NCBI GenBank assembly: GCA_002269645.1
Contig: NIVC01000085.1
Span: forward strand, 310,001 to 374,000
Length of the DNA: 64,000 nt
Direction: 5' to 3'
DNA from: Macrostomum lignano
Taxonomy: Eukaryota
The translations under genes were made by a program, and so were the position numbers. Below, in pieces: positions 4,435 to 64,000 of the stretch; the first letter of the stretch is position 1; each line of letters opens with the position of its first letter. The notes below the pieces were generated by a model. The model searched no databases. It was not told the origin of the DNA and saw only the letters and a list, made by a program, of their open reading frames with translations.

Positions 4435-6115
<1,681 letters not shown>

Positions 6116-7218: not shown

Positions 7219-8033
7219 CAGGGGCGTCGCCACGGATTTTATGGTGGGGGGGGACAAAGCCAAGAATTTTAAATGTACATGTACATGGCTAATAAATTCC
7301 TACTTGTAAATTACATTCATTTTCAGAATTAGTGTTGCCAGCACTCATTTTAGCGCCGCAGGCACTCATTTTAGCGCCGCAGGCACTCATTTTAGCGCCG
7401 CAGGCACTCATTTTAGCACCGCAGGCACTCATTTTAGCGCCGCAGGCACTTATTTTGGCACCGCAGGCACTCATTTTAGCGCCGAAGGCACTCATTTTAG
7501 TACTGCAGGCACTCATTTTAGCACTGCAGACACTCATTTTAGCACTGCAGGCACTCATTTTAGCGCCGCAGGCACTCATTTTAGCGCCGCAGACACTTAT
7601 TTTAGCGCCGCAGGCACTCATTTTAGCGCCGCAGGCACTCATTTTAGCGCCGCAGGCACTCATTTTAGCACTGCAGGCACTCATTTTGGCGCCGCAGGCA
7701 CTCATTTTAGCGCCGCAGGCACTCATTTTAGCGCCGCAGGCACTCATTTTAGCGCCGCAGGCACTCATTTTAGCGCCGCAGGCACTCATTTTGGCGCCGC
7801 AGGCACTCATTTTAGCGCCACAGGCACTCAATTTAGCGCCGCAGGCACTCATTTTAGCGCCACAGGCACTCAATTTAGCGCCGCAGGCACAATTTTGGTG
7901 CTACAGGCGCGCTATGTTTTATTTTGTGGCGCCGAAGCTAAATTATTTATTTTCATAACAGGTTAACAAAGGGGAGTGGGGGGAGGATAAAACGTTGGCT
8001 CCCCTGTCCCCCCCACCAGTGGCAACGCCCCTG
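7219..8033. mobile_element. Non-autonomous hAT-type element carrying a 21-bp minisatellite
   Basis: Terminal inverted repeats caggggcgtcgccac / gtggcaacgcccctg. Perfect 8-bp TSD gcgatcca at 7211-7218 and 8034-8041. Internal array (gcaggcactcattttagcgcc)n at ~7339-7900. Confidence 0.88.
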
Positions 8034-8494: not shown

Positions 8495-9217
8495 GTCGAA
8501 TATGAGGGCAAACTGTTTATAAATAAAACCAGAGTTTGAAGTTGTCTGTTGATAGCTCGTATCGAACGCTTAAAGTCCCAGCGTTGGTGCATGTTTCCGG
8601 GATGTTATTTTTGCCATAGACACAAAACTCAGGGTTAGATTTTTTAAAATCTTCCGGCTTTTGTACAAGTAACGCACGAGTTTTGAGGGTGACGCATGGT
8701 TAAATAACAATATAGTTTGTTCCAGTCACACCAAAATGGAGTCACACTACCATAGCGTACTTAAAATCTATTGTTAATAACGACGAAGCAGTTATTGAAG
8801 TTAGTCAACCAGACGGTTTAATAACTGTCTTTCGTCTGACATTTTGTGTATGCTGCAGTTTTAGGCAGATCAAATTAAATCGTGTTTGAAGCTGAGGAGC
8901 TAAATTAAAGAGGTCTGAATCGAGCAGTGATCTTCTCCTTCATTAGGTGGAGATAAGGGGGCTTCGCCCCAACCCCCAAATATGATTTCCGGCCATATAC
9001 TAAAAATGATAGCTTCTCTACTTGTATCAATTGCGTTGCATTTTATCAGATTATGCAGTATCGTGCACAGATAATAAAACACCAGATAATTCACTCTGCA
9101 TTGAGTTAAGACATTTTTGTTTATCCGATTGACCTTTTTGTTTATCTGATTGATTGTTTTGTTTATTCGATTGCTCTTTTTGTGATAAATATTCATTGAA
9201 ATTATATTTGTTTAAGA

Positions 9218-9638
9218 CCTGTTAGATACTTGTGTCACCTCTTTGATACTGGTGTCACCTGTTAGATACTGGTGTCACCTGTTAGATACCGATGTCACCT
9301 GTTAGATACTGATGTCACCTGTTAGATACTGATGTCACCTGCTAGATACTGATTTCACCTGTTAGATACTGATGTCACCTGTTAGATACTGATGTCAACT
9401 GTTAGATACTGGCGTCGCCTGTTAGATACTGATGTCCCCAGTTCGATACTGATGTCACCTGTTAGATACCGAAGTCACCTGTTAGATACTGATGTCACCT
9501 GTTAGATACTAGTGTCACCTGTTAGATACTGATGTCACCAGTTCGATACTGATGTCACCTGTTAGATACCGAAGTCACCTGTTAGATACTGATGTCACCT
9601 GTTAGATACTAGTGTCACCTGTTAGATACTAATGTCAC
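9218..9638. repeat. 20-bp minisatellite A (gttagatactgatgtcacct)n, left part
   Basis: Direct. The array resumes at 13058 after the retroelement. Confidence 0.97.
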
Positions 9639-12600
9639 ACTTCAGTCACACCCTGAAGGCAGATGCCCGGCTTTCGGAAAAAGCTGCTCCAAGTGTGGAA
9701 AGAAAAACCACTTCAGTACTGTTTGTAAGTCTCGATCCATGCACTACACGACTACTTGTGAGGAGGATTCAGATTCCGCCCAACAAAAAACAGACGTACT
9801 GCATCTCATCGATGCGCTCAATTCGATTGAAGTATCTATGGAGACTGTGCGCATCAACGATAAGCCCTTCAAAATGCAGATCGACACGGGAGCATCAGTC
9901 TCCGTGCTCTCCAGTGCGCAGTGGGCTCTGCTGGGTAAGCCACCACTCATGCGTTCCAATCGGCGCTTGGAGGCCTTCGACGGGCACGTCATGAAATCGC
10001 TTGGCAAAGTGACTGCAACTGTGGAGCTACGAGGACGCCTTCAACCAGTGGAACTGATTGTAGTCTCTTCGGAAAAGACGTACGGGTTGCTTGGCCGCGA
10101 CCTCCTCGAGTCTGACGGTGTCTTCCATGCCAGCGATGTTCAAGCAGAAAAAACTGCCGTCGAACCTCTGCCCTGTATCCGAGGCGTTAAGGCCCGAATG
10201 GAACTGGTGGACGGTGCTAAACCACAATTTTGCCGCGCTCGTGCTGTGGCACTCGCCCTAGAAAGCCAAATCAGCGCAGAACTGGATCGCCTCCACCAAC
10301 TTGGTGTCATCGAGCCAACAGAGGGTCCGGTTAGTTACGCTTCGCCCGTAGTGTGGGTAAAGAAGAAGGATGGAACTCTCCGCATGTGCGCGGACTACAG
10401 CGTGCACGTCAATTCGAAGATCAAATCAGACTCATATCCCATTCCACACATCGAGACCATGTTCTCCAAGCTAAAGAACGCCAAAACTTTCGCCACAGTC
10501 GATCTACGTTCGGCGTACTGGCAGATCGAGCTTGATGAAGCCGCGAGAGACCTATCGGTAATAAACACGTCCCGCGGGCTCTATCGTGTCAATCGGCTGC
10601 AAATGGGGATGAAGAACGCCTCCTTCATCTTCCAACGCACCATGGAATCCATTCTAGGAGACATCAAAGGACTGCTTATCTACCAAGACGACATTCTCAT
10701 TCACGCGCCAGACAAACCCACGCTGGAGAAGCGCCTCGCTGCTGTGCGAACGCGTCTATCTGAGAAGCGCGTGACTATCAACGAAGCGAAAAGCATCAGC
10801 TATTGCGATTCGGTTTCGTTCTTGGGCTTCCGAATATCCGCGGCTGGTATTCAGCCCGATGATCGCCTAGTGGAGAAAATTCGCCATGTGTGCCCGCCAG
10901 CAAATAAATCAGAGCTCGCTCACTTTCTTGGCTTGGTAAACTTCTTCGGCCGCCTCATCCCAAACTTTGCAGGCAAAACTGCACCGCTTAATAGACTACG
11001 ACAAGCAAGCGTTCCGTTCGTGTGGTCGGGGGACTGTTCCAAAGCGTTCGAGAGCCTAAAGCTGGAAATCGCTTCAGCGCCTGTGGTCCAGCCCTACAGC
11101 TTGACAAAGGAACTGACGCTGACCACTGATGCTTCCAAAGGAGCCCTCGCCGCCGTGGCAACACAAGATGGCCATCCCGTGATATACGTGTCACGTAGCC
11201 TGTCCTCCGCTGAATCCAATTATTCTAACATCGAGCGGGAGGCCTTGGCTATTGTTTGGGCCATCGCACGCTTGAAGCACTACTTCCATGGCCGACCATT
11301 CACAATACGCACAGACCATCAACCGCTCATCCGACTTTTTGGCTCCGGATCCGGCGTCCCAGTGGATGCCTCAGCCCGAATTGGACGCTGGGCCTTGTAC
11401 CTGATGCAGTTTGATTACCGAATTCAGTATGCATGTGGCAGTAGCATTCCACACGTAGATGCCTTATCCAGACTCAGATTCGATGACAGCTCATCAGACG
11501 ACAAGGCCACATTCGAGACGATTAATTCAATCGCATTTGAATCACCTGTGATCGACGCTAAACGAATCACAGCGGAGATGGAGTTAGACGCGCTCACCCA
11601 GAGAATTCTCAATCGCGTCCGCCAAGGCGATTGGCGAAACTGCAGCCAGGCAGAAGCGCAGTTCAAAAAAGTCTCAAACAAACTAACGCTAGAAAATGGA
11701 CTACTCTACATGCAAAGAAGAGTCTTCATTCCACCAAGACTGCGCAAGGCCGCGTTCGATGCCATTCACGACACGCACACGGGCATGCATGCAGCGCACA
11801 GTCTAATGTCTACTAGCTGCTGGTGGCCCGGAATGCAACAGGACGTTGCCCAGTTTGTTCGACGCTGTCCAGACTGCTGCAGGCTTCGGCCTCAACTCGG
11901 CCACGACAGGGATCGCTGGCCTCCATCAACGTATCCGTTTCAGCGCGTACACATGGACTGGGCATACGTAAAAGGCGCTGGAAACATCCTGGTCATCGTG
12001 GATTCCTTTTCCGGCTGGATAGAAGCCTTTCCTTGCCGCGATCGCACAGCTGATTCAGTCATTCAGTGCCTGCGTACCGTATTCACACGGTTCGGCGTCC
12101 CCGAGCTGGTGGTTTCGGACAACGCCCCAGAGTTCACCACTGAAGTGCTCACATCGTGGCTCCGCGCCAATGGTGCCAAGAAGCTCGAGTCACCCACCTA
12201 TTACCCGCAGGCGAATGGAGCCGCAGAAAGGGCCGTTCAGACCGTCAAGTCCGCACTAAGGGCCTGGTCTGAAAAAATTACACACATGGAGTTTAGCCGC
12301 TTCTTGCAAAAGGTCCTCCTGCACCACAGAAACTCAGCCTCTTCGCGGGGCTGCTGCCCAGCCGAAATTCTTTTTGGACGGCGACTCAGAGTCCCGGTGG
12401 TGACCAACTTCGAACAGGGTGACAGCGTGATCTATGCGCCAAGCAGCTCCTCAGTCGGCAACCCGGCAAAGTTCGTGATGACGGCAGGTCAAAACACGGC
12501 ATGGATCCTCGCTGACGATGGGCTTCGCCTTGCAAGCACGAATCAACTTGCCCCAATGGCCACCCGGCCATCGGAATTCGAGATGGAGGACGAAGATGAG

Positions 12601-12726
12601 ACTAACAGCGTGCCAGAAACCGGAAACGAGCCAGTCGCAGGGATTCAGACACCCGTGCCTGAAGAAGCCGTTCAGCTGAGAAGGAGCCTCAGAAACCGAT
12701 CCGCTCATGAGCGCTTTGTGCCTTAA
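9631..12726 (+). CDS. Gag(C-terminal)-Pol polyprotein: CCHC knuckle, protease, RT, RNase H, integrase
   Basis: One open frame from 9631: CSKCGKKNHFSTVC knuckle, QIDTGASVSV protease, IYQDDILI RT, TTDAS and EREALAIVWA RNase H, H..H..CPDC zinc motif plus D,D(35)E integrase. Order PR-RT-RH-IN indicates Gypsy. Confidence 0.96.
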   Translation, partial: NVTLQSHPEGRCPAFGKSCSKCGKKNHFSTVCKSRSMHYTTTCEEDSDSAQQKTDVLHLIDALNSIEVSMETVRINDKPFKMQIDTGASVSVLSSAQWALLGKPPLMRSNRRLEAFDGHVMKSLGKVTATVELRGRLQPVELIVVSSEKTYGLLGRDLLESDGVFHASDVQAEKTAVEPLPCIRGVKARMELVDGAKPQFCRARAVALALESQISAELDRLHQLGVIEPTEGPVSYASPVVWVKKKDGTLRMCADYSVHVNSKIKSDSYPIPHIETMFSKLKNAKTFATVDLRSAYWQIELDEAARDLSVINTSRGLYRVNRLQMGMKNASFIFQRTMESILGDIKGLLIYQDDILIHAPDKPTLEKRLAAVRTRLSEKRVTINEAKSISYCDSVSFLGFRISAAGIQPDDRLVEKIRHVCPPANKSELAHFLGLVNFFGRLIPNFAGKTAPLNRLRQASVPFVWSGDCSKAFESLKLEIASAPVVQPYSLTKELTLTTDASKGALAAVATQDGHPVIYVSRSLSSAESNYSNIEREALAIVWAIARLKHYFHGRPFTIRTDHQPLIRLFGSGSGVPVDASARIGRWALYLMQFDYRIQYACGSSIPHVDALSRLRFDDSSSDDKATFETINSIAFESPVIDAKRITAEMELDALTQRILNRVRQGDWRNCSQAEAQFKKVSNKLTLENGLLYMQRRVFIPPRLRKAAFDAIHDTHTGMHAAHSLMSTSCWWPGMQQDVAQFVRRCPDCCRLRPQLGHDRDRWPPSTYPFQRVHMDWAYVKGAGNILVIVDSFSGWIEAFPCRDRTADSVIQCLRTVFTRFGVPELVVSDNAPEFTTEVLTSWLRANGAKKLESPTYYPQANGAAERAVQTVKSALRAWSEKITHMEFSRFLQKVLLHHRNSASSRGCCPAEILFGRRLRVPVVTNFEQGDSVIYAPSSSSVGNPAKFVMTAGQNTAWILADDGLRLASTNQLAPMATRPSEFEMEDEDETNSVPETGNEPVAGIQTPVPEEAVQLRRSLRNRSAHERFVP

Positions 12727-13057
12727 ACTGGTATCCGAGGAGGGTTGAAAAAAAACGCGAAACTAATGAAACGACATGAAACGACTTCACTGTTCCAATC
12801 GACATCTGAATATAGGGAGGGGCATGTGGTGTATCGCACACTGAGATGCACTATAGTTTATATAAGTTCAAGTTCGTTATTCTATGCCGTTTGTTTGCAC
12901 TAATCGCCTCTAAGCATTCTATCGCTACAGTTTCTTCTATGGTAATTAACCCAGCCCAAAGTTCCTAGAGCTCACCTTCTGATCTCTCTCAAATAAGAAA
13001 TATAAAGAATCTTAAGCTCATGAGTTAAATACTTCAGCCGGAGTTCAATTCACAACA
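9635..13057 (+). mobile_element. 5'-truncated Ty3/Gypsy LTR retrotransposon (Mag-like) inside minisatellite A
   Basis: Gag end plus pol ORF. Polypurine tract agggagggg at ~12814-12822. 3' LTR 12825-13057 (tgtgg..caaca). The 5' LTR and most of gag are absent. Confidence 0.93.
12825..13057 (+). repeat. 3' LTR of Gypsy element 1 (233 bp)
   Basis: TG..CA termini, directly after a PPT and directly before the resumed satellite. Confidence 0.8.
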
Positions 13058-13308
13058 GATACCAATGTCACCTGTTAGATACTGATGTCACCTGTTAGAT
13101 ACTAGTGTCACCTGTTAGATACTGATGTCACCTGTTAGATACTAGTGTCACCTGTTAGATACTGATGTCACCTGTTAGATACTGATGTCACCTGTTAAAT
13201 ACTGATGTCACCTGTTAGATACCGGTGTCACCTGTTAGATACTGATGTCACCTGTTAGATACTGATGTCACCTGTTAGATACTGATGTCACCTGTTAGAT
13301 ACTGATGT
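13058..13308. repeat. 20-bp minisatellite A, right part
   Basis: Direct. Confidence 0.97.
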
Positions 13309-13913: not shown

Positions 13914-16900
13914 ATGGCAACGCAGATAAAGCGGAAGCTGAGAGCGGCGCTGGAGGCTGGAGACAGCGAGGAGCTGCAGCGACTGTGCGGTGAGGTGGGC
14001 AGCAACATCTGGCTGGAGGTGGGCGGCTTCGACAAGCAAAACTTTCCCTTTGAAGAGCTTTGCATGCCGCTGGCCCATCACGTGGCCTGCAAGCCTGTGA
14101 GTTCGTCGTGCCTGGAGCTGCTGATTGACAGATTCGGACGCGACTGTCTGACACATGGAAATGGTAGAGGGCAGACTCCAGTGCATTTGGCTGCCCAGCA
14201 TCAGGACGAATCTTGGATGGAGCTGGTTGAAGAGAAGGGAAGCAAAGGCTGCTTGAGAATTGTCAGTGGATGGAGAAGGGCAGTCGCTCACTTTGCCGCT
14301 ATGAACAGAAAAAGCAACTCTTGTCTGAAGTGGCTGGTGAAGGAGCTCGGCAGCGACTGTCTCACAGTTCCTGACAAATACGGTGACATGGCCGTCCATT
14401 TGGCCGCTCAGCATCAGGGAATCGAGTCGCTGGAGTGGATCAAGAGACAGATCGGAACTGACTGCTTTCGGCTGAAGGGATTTAGGGATAGAACAGCATT
14501 TCACTTTGCTGCTGAGAAGTCTGACAATTCAATGCTTAAGTGGCTGGTGAAGGAGCTCGGCAGTGACTGTCTCACAGTTCCTAACTCTAGAGGTGACACG
14601 GCCGTCCATTTGGCCGCTGAGCATCAGGGCATCGAGTCGCTGGAGTGGATCAAGAGACAGATCGGAACTGACTGCTTTCGGCTGAAGGGATTTTTGGATA
14701 GAACAGCATTTCACTTTGCTGCTCAGAAGTCTGAAAATTCAATGCTGAAGTGGCTGGTGAAGGAGCTCGGCAGCGACTGTCTCGCAGTTCCTGACAAATA
14801 CGATACCACGGCCGTCCATTTGGCCGCTCAGCATCAGGGCATCGAGTCGCTGGAGTGGATCAAGAGACAGATCGGAACTGACTGCTTTCGGCTGAAGGGA
14901 TTTTTGGATAGAACAGCATTTCACTTTGCTGCTCAGAAGTCTGATAATTCAATGCTGAAGTGGCTGGTGAAGGAGCTCGGCAGCGACTGTCTCACAGTTC
15001 CTGATAGATCCGGTGACACGGCCGTCCATTTGGCCGCTCAGCATCAGGGCATCGAGTCGCTGGAGTGGATCAAGAGACAGATTGGAACTGACTGCTTTCG
15101 GCTGAAGGGAGATGGTGATAGAAGAACATTTCACTTTGCTGCTAAGAAGTCTGACAATTCAAATCTGAAGTGGCTGGTGAAGGAGCTCGGCAGCGACTGT
15201 CTCACAGTTCCTGACAAATACGGTTACACGGCCGTCCATTTGGCCGCTCAGTGGCAGCCAGTCGACTCTCTTCAGTTCATTTTTGACCAAATCGGAGCCG
15301 AAATGTTCAGCTTGAAGAACAAGGATGGCGAAACACCGGCTGATGTTGTTGAGAGTCAGTGGCGGGACGCAGACGAGTCAGCAAAGCGGGCCTGGATTTC
15401 CTCCACGCAGCGGCGGCTCGAAGCCTCTCGGCCTCCCGCTGGCAGCTCAGCGCCGACTGCCGCCTCAGCTGGGTGAGTCCTGACTGAGAACTGCTGCTTG
15501 ACACTGAAAATACTGAAAATATTGTTTGGCGAAATTTCATTGCGCTTTGATGATCGGCGCCCTGAAATTCTCAGCAGCGCCGCAGTCAAGCGAGGGCGTC
15601 ATGAATCTGACAGTGAAGCTCCCCATGGCGCCCCCAGTCTCCTAATGGGCCCCAACCCCCACCCATAGCTCAATTTGCATCAAAGCATCAGCGAGTTCAA
15701 GTGCCATCAAAGTCTCCGAAGTTTCAAACTCTCCGATTTTATTAGGAATGTATTTGGTGTGATGTTCAAAATATTGGCACTTGAATGATTTGAGAGCCTC
15801 CAATCTCTTCGTGGCCCGCAATCTCCCGATCGCGCCATATATAGCGCCACAGGTGACGCAGAAGGGTGGTGACGCAGAAGGGTGGTGACATAGAAGGGTG
15901 GTGACGCAGAGGGGTGGTGACGGAGAAGTGCGGTGACGCAGAAGGGTGGTGACGCAGAAGGCTGAGTGACTCCAAAGTGCTCAGAAAGCCCCAAGCAACT
16001 CAAAATTCATCGAATTCCTACATTTCATGATTCAGCGCCAAGAAGCAGCTGAACCCCAGCTTCACCGACTGGGACTTCATCCTGCAGGACGAAAAGAAGC
16101 AGCTCATCGGCCGTGGCGGATTCGGTGAGGTGTACAAGGCCCTAACAGACCTCAACCAGACGGTGGCTGTCAAGGTGCTGCCCCTGAGCGGCACCGGCCA
16201 ATCGAGAAAGCTGCAGAAAGCCGTCGAGATGGAGAAGCGGGGAGTTGAGATCCTCAAGCGACTCTCGCATCCCAACATTCTGCAGTTCCTCAAGTGCGAG
16301 CAGAAGTCGGATGGGCTGTACATCTTCACCGAGCTGGTCTCGGGTCACAGCCTCTTTGAGCTGATGCAGCGTCAGAACAAGCCGTTCAAGGAGTCCGGGG
16401 TCAGGGACTTCTCCAGACAGGTGCGTCTCTGAGTTCTCTGGCGTTGCCTGGCATGGGTGGGATCAGTGTGGGATCAGTGTGAGATCGGTGTGGGATCAGT
16501 GTGGGATCAGTGTAGGATCAGTGTGGGATCAGTGTGGGATCAGTGTGGGTGGGAGCAGGTATGGGGTCTCATGACTACTCAAAACTGCTCCACCTGCAGA
16601 TCTGCTCAGGCCTGAACTTCCTGCACTGCCAGCCGGAGGGCGCCATCTTGCACCGTGACATCAAGAGCTCCAATGCGATGCTCACCAGCAAAGGCGTCAT
16701 CAAGCTGATCGACTTTGGCCTCGCCAAGGAGATCGTCGGCACCTGCGGCCTGAGCACAGGCGTCGATCCCAAAGGCACCCCCTACTTCATGGCGCCCGAG
16801 CTGTTCATGGGCGAGGGCGGTTCGATTCCGTACTCAGCCAAGACCGACGTGTGGGCCTTCGGCTGCACCGTGTATGAGCTGACGGCCATGCAGCCTCCTG

Positions 16901-17085
16901 ACGCGAACGTTCAGCAGTTCAGGATCGCCGTGCTGAGGTGCGGAGGGCGGGCGATGCCTCGGATTGCGGACGGGTTCTCAGCCGGCCTGAAGGACTTCTA
17001 CCTCAGGTGCGTAGACTATGACCCGAGGAAGCGAGCGGACACCGCGGAGCTGCTGCGGCACAGCTTCCTGAGTGCCTCATCGTGA
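13914..17085 (+). CDS. Ankyrin-repeat + Ser/Thr kinase (MAP3K/STE11-like) gene A, 3 exons
   Basis: Exons 13914-15472 (ankyrin array of 210-bp units, donor gtgagt, phase 2), 16036-16420 (GRGGFG, VAVK, phase 0) and 16600-17085 ([26 protein letters not shown]). All junctions are in frame. Confidence 0.88.
15855..15962. repeat. 16-bp intronic tandem repeat (gcagaagggtggtgac)n
   Basis: Direct; lies in intron 1 of gene A. Confidence 0.85.
16455..16548. repeat. 11-bp intronic repeat (gtgtgggatca)n
   Basis: Direct; lies in intron 2 of gene A. Confidence 0.85.
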
Positions 17086-21776: not shown

Positions 21777-22111
21777 CTTTAGAGCGCAATTGCGGACGGG
21801 TTCGCAAGCAACTTTTTGTTCATTGCTTTATTACCATTGCTTCATTTTGTTACAATTCGTTCAACTCTAACGTATCGAAATGCGGCCTCAACCCTCTGCT
21901 TGGGGGAGAGGTGTAGTGTACGCCCCTCTACGCCTGTAGGCTTGTATGTGACTATAGCTTGAGTTCTCTCGACCAACGTGCGCTAGCTCTGCCCCACCCC
22001 CCCCCCTTAACCATTGCATAACGTGGTAGCCGCACGTCGGCAGTGACTATATATTAACTCAAATATATGGTCCACGAGACCACTTTATATTTCGCGCACA
22101 AGCGCACTACA

Positions 22112-23080
22112 ATGGCGTCGCAAGTCAGTTTACAGACCCCCAGCAAATTGGACTTGCGCACGGACCCAAATGCAGCTCATACAAAATGGAAAAAATGGTC
22201 AGCCCAGTTTCAACTGTTTGCCGTCGCCTCTGGAATAGACGACAAGAAAAGACTACGGCAGCTGCTGTTGTATTCGGCCGGCGAGGACCTGCAGACGATC
22301 GCCGCGGGCCTCACCGATGAGGCCGAGGGCAAAGATATCGACACGCTCGTGGCCGCCTTGGACAGGCATTTCAACCGCAATCTGAACCTACCGTTCACTC
22401 GCTATCAATTCAGGCTCTGCACGCAACGGTCTGGCGAGCCCACGGACGAGTGGCTTCAGCGTCTCCAAGAAGCCGCCGACTGCTGTGGCTTCGAGGGTCT
22501 CAGAGACTCTCTGATTCGAGACCAGCTGATCGCTGGCTGCAGTTCCGAGCAGCTCCGCCGGAAACTGTTGGCAATGGACAATGTGGACCTGAAGCAGGCG
22601 CTCCGGGTGGCCAGGGCCATGGAGGCGGCGGAAGCCCAGGCGAGCGTCATGGAGGCCAACGAGGCGTCCGTGCAGCAGCTCCGTCGGCAGGAGGCCAGTG
22701 GGGCGTCCAACAACCGTCGACAGCCACAGACCACGCAGTCCCCGGCGGCAAGCAGCTCAAGTGCATCAGGTGCGGAGCCCCGGGCCACCGCACATGCAAC
22801 GCAGCTGAAGGCAAGACGTGCCGCCGCTGCGGCAAACGAAACCACCTGGCAAGAGCCTGCCTGTCCGCACTAAAGGTAGACGCCCGCGTCTTGCAGGCCG
22901 ACAGCGATAGCTCAGAGGTGGAGGATGGCGTCTTTTGCCTGACCGTTGCAGCCACCGGCACTGCGGCAGTCGGCGCCAAGACAACAGTGCTCGTCGGTTC
23001 AACGCAGCTGCCGGTTCTGGTGGACAGCGGCGCCGACTGCAATATCCTCACTGAGCGGGCCTGGCGCACGCTGCCGGGAC
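22112..23080 (+). CDS. Gag (with two CCHC knuckles) and start of protease; one apparent -1 frameshift near 22690
   Basis: MASQVSLQTP..RDQLIAGCSSEQLRRKLL Gag pattern. CIRCGAPGHRTC, CRRCGKRNHLARAC and VDSGADCNIL lie in the -1 frame. Confidence 0.85.
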
Positions 23081-26054
23081 CCCGCGGCTGCAACCGAATC
23101 GTACTAAAGTCTTCGCCTACCGCTCATCCAAACCGCTCAGCACCCTGGGAGCATGCAGTCTGCAGGTGTCAGCCGGGCAGGACAGCCAGGCGGTCCGCTT
23201 CATTGTCATCCCGGGCGACGGCACGAACATCTTGGGGCGCGAGGCATCAACCTTGCTGCGCCTTCTGAGCCTGGGTCCCCAGGTCAACGTAGTTGCGTCT
23301 TCCGAGACGGATGATCCAGCTATCCGGGCTGTGGTCGAGCGATTTCCGGAGCTCTTCAAGGGTCTTGGCAAGGTCAAAGACGTCTCGGTGCAGATTAACA
23401 TCAAGTCCGACGCCAGGCCTGTCTGCCACCCGCCATCTCGAGTCCCAGTGCACCTCCGGGAGGCGCTGGACCGCGAGCTAGACGAGCAGGAGCAGCTCGG
23501 CATCATCCAGCCCGTCGAAGGTCCAACGCCGTGGGTCAGCCGCATCGTCGTGGTGCCGAAGGAGGACGGCAAGAGTGTGCGAATCACACAGGATCTTCGG
23601 GACGTGAACAGAGCGGCACTGAGGGAGCGGCACCAGATCCCGACCTTCGAAGAGGCCACAAGCGACATGGCGGGGTCGACGGTCTTCTCCAAACTCGACA
23701 TCTTCAAGGCGTTTCATCAAATTGAGATCAGCGAGGACAGCCGCAGGTTCTTTGTGTTTTCTACGCCCCGAGGAATGCGTCGGCTGACCCGCCTAAGCAT
23801 GGGCTTTGCCTCTGCCTCGGAGATACTCCAACGCGTAATGCAGCGAGTGCTGGCGGGACTGACCGGCGTAAAGTGGATCCACGATGACATCATAATCCAC
23901 AGTCAGGACCTGGAGTCTCACCAGGCACACGTGGCTGCCTGTCTGGCTAGACTGCGAGAGCACGGCATCACCCTGAACGCCAGCAAGTGCCACTGGGGCA
24001 TCAGCAAGGCCAAATTCATGGCCATGACGCTGTCGAAGTATGGAATTCAGCCGTCAGAAGAAAAGATCGCAGCGCTGCAGGCCTTCAAGGACCCCCAGTC
24101 GGTCAAGGAGGTCCGGTCATTCCTGGGGTTGGCAAACCACCTCGAGAAGTTCATTCCGCAGTTGGCAGCCAAGGCGGAGCCCCTCAGGCGGCTGGTACGA
24201 AAGGGCCAGGAATTCGTCTGGGACAGCGAGCAGCAGCAGGCCTTCCAGGCCGTCAAAGACGGCATCTCCGAGAGCTCCACTCTGGCCTTCTTTGACAAGC
24301 AGCTGCCGACTGAGCTGGTGGTCGACGCATCGCCCGTCGGTGTCGGCGCCATCCTGCAGCAGCGACATTCCGGCGGCCTGACTCGCCCGGTGGCCTACGC
24401 GAGCCGAACCCTCAGCGACGTCGAGCGGCGGTACAGTCAGATCGAGCGCGAGGCCCTGGGCGTCAAGTTCGGTTGCCTGAAGTTCGCGTTCTACCTTGAG
24501 GGCTGCCCGCACTTTGATGTCTACACTGACCACAAGCCGCTGCTCGGCATCTACAGGGCGGACTCTAGGCCGCCGCCCCGGCTCGAGCGTATTGTGCTGC
24601 AGACCCAGCACTTCTCGTTTACGCTGCACTACCGCAAGGGCGAGGACAATCCGGCAGATCCCCTCAGTCGCAACCCGCTGCCGAGCGCATCGCCCGGCAA
24701 AGGCGAGGCCGCAGAGACTCGACTGCTCAACGCTGTTGTCCAGGCAGCCACGCCGAAGGGCCTGACAGTCGACAAGGTCCAGGCTGCAACCGAGTCGGAC
24801 CCGACCCTGACGGCCGTCATGCAGGCGCTGGCAACCGGGAACTGGAGCTGTGGTGCGACAGCGCCAGCGCACAGCTTCCGGTCTCTGAAAGACGAACTCA
24901 GCGTCCACGCAGGCCTGCTGCTCCGAGGCAGTAGAATTGTCATCCCAGCAGAACTGCAGCAGTTGACCATCGGCCTGGCGCATCAGGGTCACCTGGGCCA
25001 GAAAAAAACGTGCGATCGACTTCAACGCAAGGTCTGGTGGCCCGGCATGACCAAACAGGTGGAAGCCGTCGTCTCCCGCTGCCGCCCGTGCCAGGCGGCC
25101 CGGCCTGATGGGGCCACCAAGCCGCCGCCGATGCAGCCGACGCCTCTTCCGTCGGGGCCTTGGCAATCGCTAAGCGTGGATGTCTGCGGGCCATTCCCGA
25201 CCGGCGAGAACATTGTCGTGCTGGTTGACTACTTCAGCCGGTACCCGGATGTCTACGTGGTGCGAAGCCTCACCAGCTCCAGCGTCATCACCTGCGCCAT
25301 GGCCTCGTTCAGCCGCTTTGGTGTGCCGCAGCAGATCACCACGGACAACGCCACGTATTTCACGAGTGACGAGTTCAGAGAGTTTCTCGATGGCCTCGGA
25401 GTTCAGCATCGCCGCGTCACCCCGCTCTACCCGGCAGCGAATGGCGAAGTAGAGCGCTTCAACCGCAGCCTCAACAAGGCCGTCAACGCCGCCACAGCCG
25501 AAGGCAAAGACTGGCGCCGGGCCATCCACGAGTGGCTTCTCGGCTACCGCAACTCCGTGCACCGCGGCACCGACCGCTCGCCCAACGACCTCTTGTTCAA
25601 CAGGGCCGTCGGCGACGTCTTGCCTACCATCTCGACGAAGCAGCGCGGCAGCCGCGAGCGGCAACTCCAGAGCCACGACCGCAGCTACAAGCAGGCGATG
25701 CGGCAGACAGCCGACACGCGACGAGCGGCTGGGCCGCACGGCATTCAGGCGGGAGTCCGCGTGCTGCTCAAGAATCGCGGCAAAGCCAAGTTGAGGTGTC
25801 CGTTTGATCCACGCCCCTGGATCGTTAAAGCGGTAAACGGCAGCGCCCTGACTCTGGAACGTGACGGGGCCGTCTTGCGACGGCACGTGACCGAGACGAA
25901 GCGGCTGCGCGAGTGCCCCTGGGAGCCCGAAGTACTGGATGCCGGCGAGACAGCCGAGACTCCGCCCACCACGCTTGGAGGCGCGAACGAGGGAGCCATT
26001 GCGCAGAGGCCCCATCCCAGGAAGGCTAAGCGGCAAATTTGTTACAAACTATAA
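23080..26054 (+). CDS. Pol: protease C-terminal half, RT, RNase H, integrase
   Basis: After a second -1 shift at gggacccc (~23076-23083): RLQPNRTKVFAY..ILGRE, WIHDDIII (RT), VVDASPVG and EREALGV (RNase H), H..HLG..CRPC, VDYFS/TDN/VERFN (integrase). Confidence 0.95.
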
Positions 26055-27384: not shown

Positions 27385-27879
27385 CTATCCATTTCTGTCG
27401 GTGAGCGGCACCACAATCACTGGCCGGTGCGCATGGTGAACAACATAGTCCGATACGCTGCCGAGCATGGTTCGTTGAAGTCGTTTCAATCCGCGAGTGC
27501 CCATTAGAATGGCGGCAGCGTCTAGTTCCGTTGCCATGGCAACAATCGCCTTGCCCGGTTCGGCTTCGTACTTGTCAATGAACTTGACGGAGTCTGCTGG
27601 CAAGCCCAGCTGTTGGCAGAGTGCCAAGCAGCGTTTGCGCACCCTGTCGATCTGGGCTGACGATTCTTGCATCAGCTGGGTGTACAGCTCTGTCTTGGAC
27701 ATCTTCAAGGTCGTGTTGCCGCGAGGCAGCGGCGGGGCTTCAACTGAATAAAAGATCACCAGCTGATGTCGAGTGTCTCTTTCAGCATTGAGTCTGGCGA
27801 ACCAGCTCAGAGCGGCCTGGCTGTTCTCACTGTTGTCGTAGGCGAGTAGAAACACGGTGGGCTGCTGGGGCGAGGCCAT
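27385..27879 (-). CDS. Universal stress protein (UspA domain), intronless, 164 aa
   Basis: LLAYDNSENSQAALSW N-terminal motif and GKAIVAMA..AILMGTRGLKRLQRTMLGSVSDYVVHHAHRPVIVVP C-terminal USP signature. Confidence 0.95.
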   Translation of the reverse strand: MASPQQPTVFLLAYDNSENSQAALSWFARLNAERDTRHQLVIFYSVEAPPLPRGNTTLKMSKTELYTQLMQESSAQIDRVRKRCLALCQQLGLPADSVKFIDKYEAEPGKAIVAMATELDAAAILMGTRGLKRLQRTMLGSVSDYVVHHAHRPVIVVPLTDRNG

Positions 27880-38474: not shown

Positions 38475-41400
38475 TCAGGAAATGCTGGCAGCTCTGTGTA
38501 GTCTATTCGTCATCAGCCGCATGCGCGTTATTTCACCGCCCGTCAGGAACTGGTGCCTCATCAGCTCCAGGGCCGACTGTCTCTTACTGCGGTTATGAGT
38601 CGTGCAGCTGCGGTAGAAATCCTCCAACTCTTTGGAGCAACCAGGTGGAAGTTTTGGACAACCGTTATTCTTTATCAGCTGGGCTATTGTTAATAAATTA
38701 GATGCGCTATGAAACGGCCTCTGACGGGTGGCCATCTGGTAGACTGAGCAGCCGAACGCCCAGATGTCCGACTCTCTGCTGTACTGAGGCGAGGTGTCAG
38801 CCTCGCCAGCTCCGAGCAGCTCTGGAGCCATGAAGTTATGAGTGCCTCTGGGTGTCTGAGTGCTAGCTAAGTTGTGACTGACTGACAGTTTCAGTTCGAT
38901 TGAAAGGCCGAAGTCGATCAGCTTAATTCTCGTGCCTTCGGAAAGCACCATGATGTTGGAGCAGTTGATGTCTCTGTGGATCACGGGCGGCCGTCGGCTG
39001 TGCATGTAGAGCAGCGCGCTGCAGATCTGCAAGATGTTCCATTGATTACTGTAGTTTGAACTGGCCCTCTTATTTAAACGAGTCCTGTAAAACCTGTGTA
39101 AGCGTGTGCAAGAGTACGTTCCTGCGTACCGTATTGGCGCGCTTGAGTTGTATGTGCTCAGTAGTCAGCGGAACGCGCTGGTTGTGGGAACATGTCGCCG
39201 AAGGCGTGATCAAAAGCTCTCCAGTCAATATTATAATTTTTTGAAAGCACAGGAAACTTATTCACCTGCTCGCTAAAGTCTCGAATTTTGTTCTCAGGCA
39301 TTGGAGCGCCGTTAATGAATGTTTCCAAGGTCTTTCCCTCCAGCAGCTCCATGAACAGAAAGATTGTGGCAGGCTCAGTTTGAGCGATGTGCAAGAATCT
39401 GACAATGTTTCTGTGCTGCAGTCGGCACAGGTTCCTCTCGCTCTCGACCGCTTTATCGATCTTTGTACGGTCATGAGCATATTGATCAGCGGTCAATTGA
39501 CCGACGGGCAGTTTAATAATTTTCGCAACGCACTGGATGCCTTTGTCGGTAAGGACTTTGTAAACTTCGCCAAAGCCTCCTCTGCCGATGAGGTCACCTA
39601 CGTCCCAGCGCTCCATGAACGGCGGGTCTTCGTGTCTGTGTTTATTTGAATTCGAATCGCGTACAATAATAAGCTTTTAGTAGTGCAGTTTATGATATCT
39701 GACTATATGAAGCAGTCCATTGCCGCTAACCTTGCTCTGTAACATGTCTCTGTACTGTAGCTGTCCCTGTACTGTAGCTTTCCCTGTGTACTGTAGCTGT
39801 CCCTGTACTGTAGCTGTCCCTGTACTGTAGCTTTCCCTGTGTACTGTAGCTTTCCCTGTGTACTGTAGCTGTCCCTGTACTGTAGCTGTCCCTGTACTGT
39901 AGCTGTCCCTGTACTGTAGCTTTCCCTGTGTACTGTAGCTGTCCCTGTACTGTAGCTGTCCCTGTACTGTAGCTGTCCCTGTACTGTAGCTGTCCCTGTA
40001 CTGTAGCTTTCCCTGTGTACTGTAGCTGTCCCTGTACTGTAGCTGTCCCTGTACTGTAGCTGTCCCTGTACTGTAGCTGTCCCTGTACTGTAGCTTTCCC
40101 TGTGTACTGTAGCTGTCCCTGTACTGTAGCTGTCACTGTACTGTAGCTGTCCCTGTACTATAGCTGTCCCTGTACTGTAGCTGTCCCTGTACTGTAGCTG
40201 TCCCTGTACTGTAGCTGTCCCTGTACTGTAGCTGTCCCTGTACTGTAGCTGTCCCTGTACTGTAGCTGTCCCTGTACTGTAGCTGTTCCTGTACTGTAGC
40301 TGTCCCTGTACTGTAGCTGTCCCTGTACTGTAGCTGTCCCTGTACTGTAGCTGTCACTGTAGCCTATACATGTGCACTAGTTCACCCTCAGCTCAAGGTA
40401 TTTAGGGGAACTTACGGTGGCTTCAAAGGCTCCTCATAGAACTTCTTGCCCTTGTACCTACAAACAGGCAATACGGTGGTCGAAGTGACGCTTTGGTAGG
40501 TTAAAAATGTGCATAAAGTGTTTGAGCCAGAAAAACTGAATTAATTTAATTCTGAACTACAAGGTTCCAAGAAAACTCACTTTTGAAGCAGTTCAACAAG
40601 ATCTGGGTTCCCATCGGACCTGATCAAATCCAGAGCAGTCTTGCTGCAACTGTCCTTCAGACTCCAATCCGACCCAGCGTCCATCAGGATCTGACTGACT
40701 TGGACGGCGGTGTCTTTGGGCGCATAAAGAGCCGCCTGCATGAGCGGTGTGGACTTGCTTCTGTCTTCCCTGGCGTTGGCGGAGGCTCCAGCAGCCAGCA
40801 GGATGGAGGCTGCCACGGAATTTCCACTGCTGGCTGACCAGTGCAGGCAGGTGCGAGATAAAGTTTCTGCACAGGTGGGGTCGCCAAGCTGCACCAGAAC
40901 CTCCCACAGAGCCTCGTCATTGCAGTTGCTGCTCTGAGCAGCTCTGATCAAGGCGGTGAAGCCGGAACTGTCGGGCAGGTCGCAGTTGGCTCGAGTTACC
41001 TTCTGCCGGAGACGAGTCCAGTCGCCCGCTCTGATCAACTTCTCCAGTTCTCCTTGTTCCGCCAGTTCCTACAGAAAGATACCGTGGAGCATTCGATAAC
41101 AATCTCACAAGTTGCATAATAGATACGAAAGTTGCTACTTGCCTTTTCTGTTAGACCAGTGATGGAGTCATAGGCATCAACAGTCAGCCGCATCTCTCTG
41201 CAACAGAATAATTGACATTATATTCGTAAAGTTTGGTTGCAAAACACAAATAAACAATTCCTCCATCACCTTTTGATATAGTTGGCGAGCTCTGAGTGAC
41301 CATTGATCCTTGCCAGATCCAACGCCGTCCGACCCTCGACATCTTTGAGTCCGAGCAGGCGCTCTCTCACAGAGTTGCTGGGCTTGCCGGCCTGAGGCTT

Positions 41401-42092
41401 GTAGAACTGCCGCTGCCTGAGCAGGTGCAGCAGGTGCTTGGCGCATCTCCAGCTGCCGGTCCGCGCCGCCTCCATCAGCGGAGTGGCGCCCCGCCGGTTC
41501 TGCAGCCACTTCGCATCGAACGACAGCAGCATCAGCAGCCGCAGGTGGTCCCGACGGGCTGCCAGGTGCGCGGCCGTGTCGCCCGAGTCATCAATAATCG
41601 ATTTTTGATTGGCAACCAGCTCGAACAAGTACATGACGCACTTCTCAGCTTGAATGGGCGTCTCGGGAGCGTCGGCAACCAGCATGAGTATGGTTCGGTT
41701 AGCGGCATCAGGCTCGCTCACCAGCTGGCTCGTTGCCAGCCGCTGCACCTGAGCAAAGTCACCCTGGATGACGGACTGGGCGAGAGTCTCCAGGGCAGCT
41801 GTTGAGACTTCGGTGCCTGCCTGATGATGTGCTGGGAGATCCTGCGGCGTAAAAATTCAAAGTCACGACAGTGTACATTACGAGAGGAAAGGCAATACAA
41901 GTAGAAGAAAAAAGAGGGGAGAGAAGAGGTGAGAGGAAAAAGAAGAGAGAGAAGAAGGCCAAGAAGAGACAAAGTACTGGAATGTTTCAAAAGATATGAA
42001 GGCTTCGTGCGGGCCCCTGCTTTACAAACAGACTCATTTAATTTCAAACTCACTTCGCTGTCTGCACCTGAGGTCGACTCATCTCGAGACAT
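38475..42092 (-). CDS. Ankyrin-repeat + kinase gene C, 6 exons
   Basis: Exons 42092-42054, 41841-41270, 41197-41143 (followed by a GC-AG intron), 41068-40581, 39635-39266 and 39026-38475. All phases are consistent. Ankyrin motifs GDTAAHLAA, GATPLMEAA, GFTALIRAA. Kinase motifs GRGGFG, CVAK, HRDINCSN, DFG, APE. Confidence 0.85.
39750..40360. repeat. 17-bp intronic minisatellite (tgtactgtagctgtccc)n
   Basis: Direct; lies in the ankyrin-kinase intron of gene C. Confidence 0.96.
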
Positions 42093-55732: not shown

Positions 55733-55780
<48 letters not shown>

Positions 55781-55847
55781 GTCAGACAGACAGTCACACA
55801 GACAGACAGACAGACACTCAGTCAGACAGACAGACAGACAGACACTC

Positions 55848-55900
<53 letters not shown>

Positions 55901-56021
55901 CTCAGTCAGACAGACAGACAGACAGACAGACAGACACTCAGTCAGACTGACAGATAGACAGACAGTCAGACAGTCAGACAGACAGACAGACACAGTCAGA
56001 CAGTCAGACAGATAGACAGAC

Positions 56022-56074
<53 letters not shown>

Positions 56075-56422
56075 ACAGACATAGCAAAGTACCTTTTGCA
56101 CTTTTTCAATCCGAGCCGGCTGACTGAGATCGGTGTCCGGGATGCACAGGCTCACCTGATACTGGCTCTTGTCCTCGTCTGCAATTTGTAGCGAGGTAAA
56201 AAATAAAAATGCACCTCTATCAATTAAAAGTACATAACAAACTTATAAGAGTGATGGAATAGCGCTCTCACGAGGCAGCGGATCCTTGCGGAGGTCCTTC
56301 ACAACTAGCTGGCCACGGAGGCGCTCGCAGCTGAAATTGCTGCCGATTAGAGTCTGCCGCAGGTCTGGCGTCACGATGGAGAGCAGATGCTGCGGGGCGG
56401 CGTTGTGGGGGCTGGGTGAATG

Positions 56423-56470
<48 letters not shown>

Positions 56471-56537
56471 GTCAGACAGACAGTCACACAGACAGACAGA
56501 CAGACACTCAGTCAGACAGACAGACAGACAGACACTC

Positions 56538-56590
<53 letters not shown>

Positions 56591-56711: not shown

Positions 56712-56764
<53 letters not shown>

Positions 56765-62434: not shown

Positions 62435-64000
62435 ATGGCAACGGAGATGGAGCGGAAGCTGAGAGCGGCGCTGGAGGCTGGAGACAGCGAGGAGCTGCAG
62501 CGACTGTGCGGTGAGGTCGGCAGCAACATCGAGCTGGAGGTGGGCGGGTTCGACGAGCAAGACTATCCCTATTTTACAGAGATTCTTGTAATGCCGCTGG
62601 CCCATCACGTGGCCTGCAAGCCGGTGAGTTCGTCGTGCCTGGAGCTGCTGATTGACAGATTCGGACCCGACTGTCTGACACATGGACATGATAGGGGCAA
62701 GACTCCAGTGCACTTTGCTGCTCAGCATCAGGACGAATCTTGGATGAAGCTGGTTAAAGAGAAGGGAGGCAGAGGCTGCTTGAGAATTGTCAGTGGATGG
62801 AGAGAGACAGTCGCTCACTTTGCCGCTATGAACAGAAAAAGCAACTCTTGTCTGAAGTGGATGGTGAAGGAGCTCGGCAGCGACTGTCTCACAGTTCCTG
62901 ACGAATTCGGTGACACGGCCGTCCATTTGGCCGCTCAGCATCAGGGCATCGAGTCGCTGGAGTGGATCAAGAGACAGATCGGAACTGGCTGCTTTCGGCT
63001 GAAGGGAGAAGGTGATAAACGAACATTTCACATTGCTGCTCAGAAGTCTGACAATTCAATGCTGAAGTGGCTGGTGAAGGAGCTCGGCAGCGACTGTCTC
63101 ACAGTTCCTGACGAATTCGGTGACACGGCCGTCTATTTGGCCGCTCAGCATCAGGGCATCGAGTCGCTGGAGTGGATCAAGAGACAGATCGGAACTGACT
63201 GCTTTCGGCTGAAGGGAGATGATGATAGAACAGCATTTCACTTTGCTGCTCAGAAGTCTGACAATTCAATGCTGAAGTTGCTGGTGAAGGAGCTCGGCAG
63301 TGACTGTCTCACAGTTCCTGACATAGACGATGACACAGCCGTCGATTTGGCCGCTCAGCATCAGGGCATCGAGTCGCTGGAGTGGATCAAGAGACAGATC
63401 GGAACTGACTGCTTTCGGCTGAAGGGATTGTGGGATAGAACAGCATTTCACTTTGCTGCTCAGAAGTCTGACAATTCAAATCTGAAGTGGCTGGTGAAGG
63501 AGCTCGGCAGCGACTGTCTCACAGTTCCTGACTATTGGGGTACCACGGCCGTCCATTGGGCCGCTGAGCATCAGGGAATCGAGTCGCTGGAGTGGATCAA
63601 GAGACAGATCGGAACTGACTGCTTTCGGCTGAAGGGAGATGATGATAGAACAGCATTTCACATTGCTGCTAAGAAGTCTGACAATTCAAATCTGAAGTGG
63701 CTGGTGAAGGAGCTCGGCAGCGACTGTCTCACAGTTCCTGACCAATGCGGTGACACGGCCGTCCATTTGGCCGCTCAGCATCAGGGCATCGAGTCGCTGG
63801 AGTGGATCAAGAGACAGATCGGAACTGACTGCTTTCGGCTGAAAGGAAGGCTCGATAGAACAGCATTTCACATTGCTGCTAAGAAGTCTGACAATTCAAA
63901 TCTGAAGTGGCTGGTGAAGGAGCTCGGCAGCGACTGTCTCACAGTTCCTGACCAATGCGGTGACACGGCCGTCCATTTGGCCGCTGTGCATCAGCCAGTC
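62435..64000 (+). CDS. Ankyrin-repeat gene D (paralogue of gene A exon 1), runs off the window
   Basis: ATG at 62435 ([17 protein letters not shown]..). The frame stays open through six VPD-containing 70-aa units to the window end. Upstream 61475-62435 is homologous to 13058-13914. The kinase exons are presumed to lie beyond the window. Confidence 0.9.
   Translation, partial: MATEMERKLRAALEAGDSEELQRLCGEVGSNIELEVGGFDEQDYPYFTEILVMPLAHHVACKPVSSSCLELLIDRFGPDCLTHGHDRGKTPVHFAAQHQDESWMKLVKEKGGRGCLRIVSGWRETVAHFAAMNRKSNSCLKWMVKELGSDCLTVPDEFGDTAVHLAAQHQGIESLEWIKRQIGTGCFRLKGEGDKRTFHIAAQKSDNSMLKWLVKELGSDCLTVPDEFGDTAVYLAAQHQGIESLEWIKRQIGTDCFRLKGDDDRTAFHFAAQKSDNSMLKLLVKELGSDCLTVPDIDDDTAVDLAAQHQGIESLEWIKRQIGTDCFRLKGLWDRTAFHFAAQKSDNSNLKWLVKELGSDCLTVPDYWGTTAVHWAAEHQGIESLEWIKRQIGTDCFRLKGDDDRTAFHIAAKKSDNSNLKWLVKELGSDCLTVPDQCGDTAVHLAAQHQGIESLEWIKRQIGTDCFRLKGRLDRTAFHIAAKKSDNSNLKWLVKELGSDCLTVPDQCGDTAVHLAAVHQPV

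Follow-up and report, generated by a model that had tools for sequence, protein, structure and literature searches.

The 64,000-nt stretch of Macrostomum lignano DNA analysed here (contig NIVC01000085.1 of assembly GCA_002269645.1, positions 310,001 to 374,000 of the forward strand; hereafter the window, whose numbering is used unless another locus is named) raises the question of what is achieved by gene A, which encodes an array of almost identical ankyrin (ANK) repeat units, differing mainly at a few clustered residues, fused to a protein kinase. The original prediction, made from the letters of the window, was that the array is a natural counterpart of the designed ankyrin repeat proteins (DARPins), varied at its binding surface and wired to the kinase as a receptor. 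From the analysis presented here, gene A probably belongs to a cytosolic and lineage-restricted family of ANK-kinases, in which concerted evolution of the array is combined with diversifying selection on its target-binding groove, and its closest parallel, on the best reading, would be the high-internal-conservation (HIC) ANK repeats of fungal NLRs.

Gene A lies on the + strand in three exons (13914-15472, 16036-16420 and 16600-17085) with two GT-AG introns, and its spliced product is 100% identical to the deposited M. lignano protein BOX15_Mlig013667g2 (PAA91485.1 / A0A267GZQ1), of 809 amino acids (aa). Pfam assigns ankyrin families to about aa 80-480 (Ank_2, Ank_4, Ank_5, Ank and Ank_3, with E-values of 1e-22 to 1e-37, all of the ankyrin superfamily, clan CL0465) and a protein kinase to aa 540-805 (Pkinase, E = 1.7e-54). 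Sequence matches of the ANK region in the PDB were to NOMPC, ankyrin-R/B and DARPins. The solenoid comprises about 13-14 ANK repeats, and a disordered linker of roughly 20-50 aa precedes the kinase. The parts of the gene are as follows.

13914..15472, + strand: exon 1, holding the start codon, N-terminal cap, divergent ANK repeats, homogenised array, C-terminal ANK cap and linker (aa 1-520); from the open reading frame (ORF), the GT donor at 15473 and Pfam Ank
13914..14324, + strand: N-terminal cap and three non-homogenised ANK repeats (aa 1-137), with helix pairs H2-25, H53-79, H89-115 and H124-145 in the AlphaFold2 (AF2) model
15473..16035, + strand: intron 1, GT-AG, with a 16-bp minisatellite at 15852-15970
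16036..16420, + strand: exon 2, the kinase N-lobe, with the G-loop GRGGFG, the VAVK lysine and the alphaC glutamate, residues invariant in 17 paralogues
16421..16599, + strand: intron 2, GT-AG, with an 11-bp minisatellite
16600..17085, + strand: exon 3, the kinase C-lobe, with the stop codon at 17083-17085

Within exon 1, Tandem Repeats Finder (TRF) located an array of 210-bp period at 14325-15251 (4.4 copies, 92% matches), and a sister array at 62851-63994 belongs to gene B, a tandem paralogue. In the register that begins LKWLVKELG, translation of the gene A array gives four complete units of 70 aa, followed by a fifth that passes into a C-terminal cap, a terminal unit of a type kept in all paralogues. 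That the units are near-identical pairs of ankyrin repeats was borne out by both TRF and the translation, the framework being 94-98% identical at the nucleotide level with a synonymous divergence (dS) of 0.04-0.05. Whole units are 84-91% identical in pairwise amino acid comparisons, with means of 87% for gene A and 86% for gene B over 280-350 aa, and the units of both genes thus show the identity of at least 85% over at least 100 aa by which HIC repeats are defined. The two ANK types within a unit are only 34% identical to each other.

14325..15164, + strand: four full 210-bp units, A1-A4, starting at 14325, 14535, 14745 and 14955, each of two 35-aa ANK repeats
15165..15374, + strand: fifth unit, its first 28 codons array-like (to about 15251), followed by the C-terminal ANK and cap
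62435..64000, + strand: gene B, running off the end of the window, with a gene-A-like N-terminal region
62852, 63062, 63272, 63482 and 63692, + strand: starts of the five full units of gene B; a sixth begins at 63902

The differences among units are strongly localised. Among the nine full units of the window, 40 of the 210 nucleotide sites are variable, including all 12 sites of codons 18, 19, 53 and 54 (hypergeometric P = 5e-10), and these 12 nt, which make up 5.7% of the unit, hold 44% of all pairwise nucleotide differences. Variation is solely synonymous in only 5 of the 27 variable codons. The strings on which the original prediction had been built are all present, both after VPD/VPN (KYGDM, SRGDT, KYDTT, RSGDT and KYGYT) and after RLKG (FRDRT, FLDRT, FLDRT and DGDRRT), and the clustering of differences behind these two motifs was confirmed. 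The corresponding hypervariable (HV) patches are referred to as HV1 and HV2. Upstream of the array, 13914..14324 of gene A and its gene B equivalent are 6.6% divergent, and beta-turn positions again concentrate the differences.

The sample was then widened by adding the loci of five paralogues and extracting each in-frame unit, which gave 30 distinct DNA units from six genes. The values for these units are pairwise Nei-Gojobori counts of the proportion of non-synonymous differences (pN) and of non-synonymous (dN) and synonymous divergence, obtained from units that recombine. At codons 18, 19, 53 and 54, pN is 0.63-0.68 and saturated, with dN about 1.6; it is 0.27-0.33 at codons 21, 29, 64 and 70, and 0.15-0.17 at codons 52, 56 and 61. 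The framework, defined as the other 62 codons, has a dS of 0.039 and a dN of 0.032. Sites defined in the window rank top again in the 21 units of the five other loci (pN 0.67, dS 0.03 for the rest), and their prominence is therefore not a product of post-hoc site picking. Compared site by site across units and paralogues, the differences are neither evenly spread nor mostly synonymous.

14376..14387, + strand: HV1 patch of unit A1 (codons 18-21, KYGD), pN 0.63-0.68 at codons 18 and 19 and 0.33 at codon 21
14586-14597 (SRGD), 14796-14807 (KYDT), 15006-15017 (RSGD) and 15216-15227 (KYGY), + strand: HV1 patches of the other units
14481..14486, + strand: HV2 patch of unit A1 (codons 53-54, FR), pN 0.67 at both codons
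14691-14696 (FL), 14901-14906 (FL) and 15111-15116 (DG), + strand: HV2 patches of the other units
14409..14411, + strand: secondary variable codon 29 of unit A1 (ANK position 13, Q/E/L/K/R), recurring every 210 bp
14514-14516, + strand: codon 64 of unit A1, the second-ANK counterpart of codon 29, recurring every 210 bp

Two independent measures of neutral divergence agree with the framework dS. The 5′ flanks of gene A and gene B differ by 0.035 (96.5% identical). Between paralogues the kinase exons have a dS of 0.03-0.08 and a dN/dS of 0.27-0.40, and are under purifying selection. At codons 21, 29, 56 and 64 the nucleotide diversity (pi) of the third position is 0-0.07, compared with 0.54-0.69 at the first position of codons 21, 29 and 64 and 0.38 at the second position of codon 56; at codons 29 and 64, where pN is 0.27 and 0.31, the third position is invariant. 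Because the third positions of these four codons are invariant or nearly so, the excess of change is specifically non-synonymous. Whether the HV-core codons could simply be of greater age than the framework was answered ambiguously at codons 18, 19, 53 and 54 (third-position pi 0.46-0.60, mostly non-synonymous swaps), and the argument for selection was rested on codons 21, 29, 56 and 64 together with framework dS, where the third-position comparison is clear. Judged from sequence, diversifying selection is acting at the predicted binding-surface positions, and the claim of a diversifying recognition module on a kinase holds.

Positions 2, 3, 5 and 13 of the repeat line the target-binding groove in ankyrin proteins. 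In alignments with the full-consensus DARPin NI3C, unit position 17 corresponds to D1, unit positions 18, 19 and 21 to DARPin positions 2, 3 and 5, and unit positions 29, 30 and 16 to DARPin positions 13, 14 and 33; alignments with ankyrin-R/B yield the same register. In the second ANK, codons 53, 54, 56 and 64 are placed at positions 2, 3, 5 and 13 by the TxxH/AA motif. The positions randomised in the 2003 library of Binz and colleagues are reportedly 2, 3, 5, 13, 14 and 33. The seven most variable codons of the array all fall within the 12 DARPin-equivalent codons (P = 6.6e-7) and occupy positions 2, 3, 5 and 13 of the two ANK types, position 5 of the second ANK ranking tenth. The correspondence proposed in the original prediction thus stands at four of the six positions, 2, 3, 5 and 13 being variable, and fails at positions 14 and 33, which are conserved in the array (His/Lys and Pro/Lys). 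An AF2 model built from 17 paralogues has pLDDT (predicted local distance difference test) scores above 90 across the solenoid, with 14 helix pairs. DSSP assignments on this model put aa 155, 156 and 158 of HV1 (patch aa 155-158) in the loop that leads into helix 1, and make aa 166 (codon 29) the last residue but one of that helix; in the next repeat, aa 190 and 191 of HV2 occupy the corresponding loop and aa 201 (codon 64) comes just after helix 1. Ankyrin domains and DARPins have their concave binding surface built from beta-turn and helix-1 elements of this kind (PMC8229355).

The framework bears the marks of concerted evolution. Framework distance is 0.020 between units within genes, barely below the 0.026 between genes, and is uncorrelated with HV identity, being 0.0233 for units that share an HV motif and 0.0240 for those that do not. 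Since a shared HV motif brings no closer framework, the HV patches and the framework have been uncoupled by recombination. Each HV motif is always written in the same codons, SRGD for instance as TCTAGAGGTGAC in all of its 8 occurrences in 5 genes, which indicates that motifs are copied and not reinvented. SRGD is paired with 6 different second-ANK motifs and DD with 6 different first-ANK motifs, and this four-gamete violation between HV1 and HV2 points to recombination between the halves of a unit. The 30 units between them carry 20 distinct HV1 tetrapeptides and 12 distinct HV2 dipeptides.

In the genomic DNA of the paralogues the number of full units ranges from 2 to 13, and reading frames are unbroken across every array. 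Annotated proteins under-count the units, with 13 in frame in locus L002 (10415-13150) compared with 4 in its protein P0003, 5 in L003 (3421-4473) compared with 4 in P0004, and 3 in L006 (3415-4044) compared with 2 in P0008; the annotation of these loci seems to have merged repeats or removed them as introns. Since public gene models collapse arrays in this way (4 annotated units for 13 genomic ones), the size and diversity of the repertoire are underestimated.

A second subfamily, represented by P0016 (L004, 3403-4884), has a homogenised array of its own, with seven units of 210/213 bp, in which HV dN is 0.50 and framework dS 0.022. Its variable sites are positions 2, 3, 5, 10 and 13 of the second ANK and position 5 of the first, the most variable being second-ANK position 10 (C/W/K/R/H/F), followed by 13, 2 and 3. 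In P0015 (L005) an array of gene-A type (83% identity) is joined to a kinase with only 40% identity to that of gene A and 67-73% identity to those of two further genes of the window, C and D. P0015 is therefore a natural chimera, and recognition and kinase modules have recombined within the family.

The gene A kinase looks catalytically intact and active, in that K566, E586, H666-R667-D668, N673, D686-F687-G688 and A713/E715 are invariant across the 17 paralogues. Its best sequence matches in the PDB were STK25, SLK, ASK1/MAP3K5, MST3/4 and MAP3K2 (E about 1e-34 to 1e-35, about 30% identity), and its best structural matches were STK10, SLK, ASK1, TAO3 and MST2, with template-modelling (TM) scores of 0.75-0.84. 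STE20-type kinases (STK25, SLK, STK10, MST3/4) tie with MAP3Ks (ASK1, MAP3K2) in both comparisons, and the kinase is best described as STE-group-like, with the STE20/MAP4K and STE11/MAP3K subfamilies level and the MAP3K-like kinase of the original prediction one of two equally placed candidates. Foldseek returned RNase L as the top match for the whole chain, at the level of domains only (TM 0.25-0.29, root-mean-square deviation about 22 A); whole-chain fold matching was accordingly discarded as evidence on domain arrangement, the matches being domain-level only.

No signal peptide or transmembrane segment was found in the gene A protein, in which the highest Kyte-Doolittle mean over 19 residues is 1.25 and lies inside the kinase. 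With a hydrophilic N-terminus and no 19-residue stretch that has the hydrophobicity of a membrane span, the gene product is soluble and cytoplasmic, and the suggestion of a receptor of LRR-kinase or cell-surface type has to be dropped. Pfam gave only Ank and kinase families for gene A and its paralogues, with NACHT and NB-ARC absent; having no NOD domain, these proteins are therefore not NLRs. The comparison with somatic assembly of the variable lymphocyte receptor (VLR) type likewise fails, the germline gene being complete and in frame and the array identical on two contigs. The second copy of gene A, P0121 (BOX15_Mlig013667g1), lies on another contig (439,069 bp) and is identical at 806 of 809 residues; its three differences (S64T, N526D and R577G) all lie outside the array, and the number of units and every HV residue are the same. 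In this partly polyploid genome P0121 is probably a haplotig or a recent duplicate.

A word-indexed search returned about 30 relatives from M. lignano, and the next matches (E about 1e-33 and weaker) covered the kinase and/or generic ankyrin repeats only. Of the 10 strongest source-checked hits in an exhaustive HMMER search with the C-terminal cap, linker and kinase, 8 came from M. lignano, the others being P0133, from a Logan contig, and an ENA protein. P0133 has a 50% identical kinase, and its ANK repeats are ordinary, non-homogenised ones of 33 aa. Among public proteins, the ANK-kinase architecture is nearly confined to this lineage, and the homogenised hypervariable array was seen only in M. 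lignano.

These findings are best explained by the following mechanism, which we consider probable. Unequal crossing-over and gene conversion would keep the unit framework near-identical within a gene and across at least 6 paralogous genes, and the same homogenising process would alter the number of units (2 to 13) and reshuffle units and half-units between genes. Diversifying selection would meanwhile keep positions 2 and 3 of each ANK beta-turn different, and positions 5 and 13 more weakly so. Each paralogue would then present its own binding surface on a constant scaffold, and the family would amount to a germline-encoded repertoire of 'natural DARPins'. The array may bind a variable protein ligand, with binding recruiting or activating the kinase, which could in turn signal by a route of the STE/MAPK type. 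By analogy with fungal HIC-ANK NLRs, a conflict or non-self setting would be the biologically likeliest one. It is possible, though we put it forward only tentatively, that the family is an animal, NOD-less counterpart of the fungal HIC NLRs, made up of germline-encoded intracellular sensors that signal through an attached STE-type kinase; their targets could then be foreign or selfish proteins, such as those of viruses, intracellular microbes, transposons or allogeneic sperm. Flatworms would in that case possess a class of innate recognition molecules that had so far gone unrecognised. The observation from which the original prediction started was confirmed and its interpretation, taken as a whole, is partly supported; the immune role that it implies is conjectural.

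Several points weigh against concerted evolution with diversifying selection on the groove. We infer the placement of the HV residues on the concave face from the sequence register and the predicted secondary structure. The HV sites were chosen from the data themselves and then replicated on independent units. The ratio of HV dN to framework dS, about 40, should not be taken for a true omega, since the framework is reset time and again by homogenisation. What it shows is that diversity is actively maintained or produced at the contact residues and erased around them. Framework dN/dS is about 0.8, which suggests that constraint on the array is generally relaxed, and the lack of any HV change in the near-identical copy on the second contig argues that diversification is not fast at the shortest timescale. 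A search of the literature by species and ankyrin, and by Mlig013667, Mlig028886, Mlig011736, Mlig020446 and Mlig023755, found no description of the family; fungal immune receptors and engineered binders show such a pattern, which seems not to have been described before for an animal kinase family.

The main rival explanation is diversification toward different endogenous partners. Here the array would recruit endogenous partners of the kinase, as in ILK and TNNI3K, the paralogues having sub-functionalised and gene conversion homogenising the rest, with no conflict involved. ANK domains on kinases commonly bind endogenous regulators, and such an origin would suit the stability of the array between the two near-identical copies, the conservation of the kinase under purifying selection and the ordinary ANK repeats of P0133, a relative with a 50%-identical kinase that is not in the annotated M. 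lignano set. A fixed elongated partner, however, does not predict anything from 2 to 13 units, and neither the free reshuffling of HV motifs between genes, with 20 HV1 motifs in 30 units, nor a second subfamily (P0016) evolving likewise would be expected. We consider this explanation unlikely.

Neutral drift, in which the variable residues would be unconstrained surface loops and the remainder would be under purifying selection, is very improbable. Ankyrin positions 2, 3, 5 and 13 are the least conserved in general, which is the basis of DARPin design, and the framework dN/dS of about 0.8 is high. Unconstrained sites, however, cannot outpace synonymous or flanking sites, and drift is contradicted by HV codons that are saturated (pN 0.65) where framework dS is 0.03-0.05, the 5′ flank differs by 0.035 and kinase dS is 0.03-0.08. 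Nor does it account for invariant third positions in codons 21, 29, 56 and 64, whose other positions are highly polymorphic.

Programmed or targeted mutagenesis, or somatic assembly, writing the HV patches in the style of diversity-generating retroelements, VLRs or immunoglobulin gene conversion, is scarcely credible. The variation is extremely localised, the HV motifs are cassette-like and common to several genes, and retroelements with reverse transcriptase lie nearby (9739-12726 and 22067-26054). These elements, however, carry ordinary pol genes of Ty3/Gypsy type, no template copy and no base-specific (for example adenine-only) pattern is visible for the HV codons, and the diversity is already encoded across germline paralogues. 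The array with its HV patches is, moreover, identical on two independently assembled contigs, which argues against ongoing hypermutation or somatic diversification. Least plausible of all is an artefact in the assembly or annotation of this genome, which is partly polyploid and rich in repeats. An artefact would fit a window full of minisatellites and the under-counting of units in annotated proteins (13 in L002, 4 in P0003), but not intact frames in every array, a gene A product matching at 806 of 809 residues on another contig with the same array, or changes that are non-synonymous and concentrated in four codons, as sequencing errors would not be.

Concerted evolution with diversifying selection is thus preferred, and it concerns a locus with further members. 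Between genes A and B, on the strand opposite to theirs, are genes C and D, with short, non-homogenised ANK regions and kinases of a second lineage (VIHRDINCSN), which makes the window a cluster of four ANK-kinase genes. The other features of the window are these.

38475..41748, - strand: gene C, ANK and kinase, with non-homogenised ANK, from ORFs and Pfam Ank and Pkinase; kinase 67% identical to that of P0015
44564..47951, - strand: gene D, ANK and lineage-2 kinase, from ORFs and Pfam
9739-12726, + strand: Ty3/Gypsy-type long terminal repeat (LTR) retroelement with an intact 995-aa pol (protease, reverse transcriptase, RNase H and integrase)
22067-26054, + strand: second Ty3/Gypsy-type element, with a 962-aa pol-like ORF downstream of one of 268 aa that has no Pfam match
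27385-27879, - strand: 164-aa ORF with a universal stress protein (Usp) domain (Pfam E = 5e-23)
32653-33492, + strand: 279-aa ORF with no Pfam match

The coding regions of the two retroelements flank gene A. In the second, the 268-aa ORF is presumed from its position to be gag, and the longer ORF is called pol-like from its translation. A 20-bp minisatellite, AGATACTGATGTCACCTGTT, is present upstream of both genes A and B and again elsewhere in the window (13057-13308, 61475-61823, 60390-60665 and 9217-9638), and a 21-bp one, GCACTCATTTTAGCGCCGCAG, is present at 7341-7890 and 29222-30938 in opposite orientation, the larger copy having about 82 units. The window holds 54 TRF rows, among them (TGTC)n at 4869-5841 and a duplicated (GACA)n at 55733-56081 and 56423-56771. 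Among the paralogues, a 29-aa Pro/Arg-rich mini-exon (AAAPRPRPRARQS...) is present in the ANK-kinase linker of P0003, P0004 and P0006-P0008 (L002, about 14186-14270); gene A lacks it, and its intron 1 (15473-16035) gave no significant similarity to indicate a remnant. In the gene for P0004 (L003, 3001-21256) the ANK exon is about 15 kb from the kinase exons, compared with 0.56 kb in gene A, which suggests a large insertion in its intron 1, and a further ANK gene lies directly downstream on the opposite strand.

Comparison with known systems places the family between several of them. With the STE-group kinases (STK25/MST3/MST4, SLK, STK10/LOK, ASK1, MAP3K2 and TAO) gene A shares the HRDIKxxN and GTPYFMAPE motifs, but these kinases all lack an N-terminal ANK array. 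An ANK array and a kinase in one cytosolic polypeptide are found in ILK, TNNI3K, RIPK4/ANKK1 and DAPK1, and an ANK array with a kinase fold in the single cytosolic chain of RNase L (ANK sensor, pseudokinase and RNase), whose N-terminal ANK domain is a ligand sensor and offers a useful architectural analogy. All of these, however, have divergent, non-homogenised repeats and are conserved single-copy genes, and the gene A kinase is STE-like and apparently active, neither a pseudokinase nor a TKL kinase.

Concerted coding repeats with hypervariability confined to the ligand-contact residues are also known from the zinc-finger minisatellite of PRDM9, an animal precedent for this combination, and from the repeat-variable diresidues of TALEs. 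Their repeats read DNA bases and have another fold and no kinase, whereas ANK repeats bind proteins. The combination, as found in fungal NLRs, PRDM9 and TALEs, is a mark of recognition molecules under conflict, and the M. lignano family would add an ankyrin-based animal example of something rare for structured domain repeats in animals. With DARPins the array shares variability at positions 2, 3, 5 and 13 on a constant framework, in a register checked against NI3C. It differs in being natural and not designed, in the conservation of positions 14 and 33, in its 35-aa repeats of two alternating types that are 34% identical, and in its fusion to an enzyme. The family would be a natural experiment on variable ankyrin positions on a fixed scaffold, with relevance to the engineering of binders, and M. 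lignano is amenable to RNA interference, transgenesis and inbred-line genetics, which makes the hypothesis directly testable.

The closest resemblance is to the HIC ANK, TPR and WD repeats of fungal NLRs (Podospora HET-D/E, the HNWD family and Pa_3_8560; Dyrka et al. 2014, PMC4986451), which combine identity of at least 85% with polymorphic repeat numbers, exchange of repeats between loci and positively selected sites on the concave face. HIC repeats were found in only 0.8% of metazoan ANK/TPR/WD proteins (PMC4986451), and surveys have found concerted evolution to be 'the exception' in animal domain repeats, enriched in host-pathogen functions. As in the fungal genes, near-identical tandem repeats vary in number and are exchanged within and between paralogues, selection falls on a few positions that map, in the M. 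lignano array by prediction, to the concave beta-hairpin binding face of the ANK domain, and the repeat domain is swapped among effector domains (compare P0015). Unit number was compared here among paralogous genes of M. lignano. The M. lignano array is further distinguished by its N-terminal position, where the fungal repeats are C-terminal, by a unit that is a double ankyrin of 70 aa and not a single 33-aa repeat, by its animal host, by the absence of a NACHT or NB-ARC domain, and by its direct attachment to a kinase. The family would thereby add to the fungal HIC NLRs a variable binding module coupled straight to a kinase, with no NOD switch.

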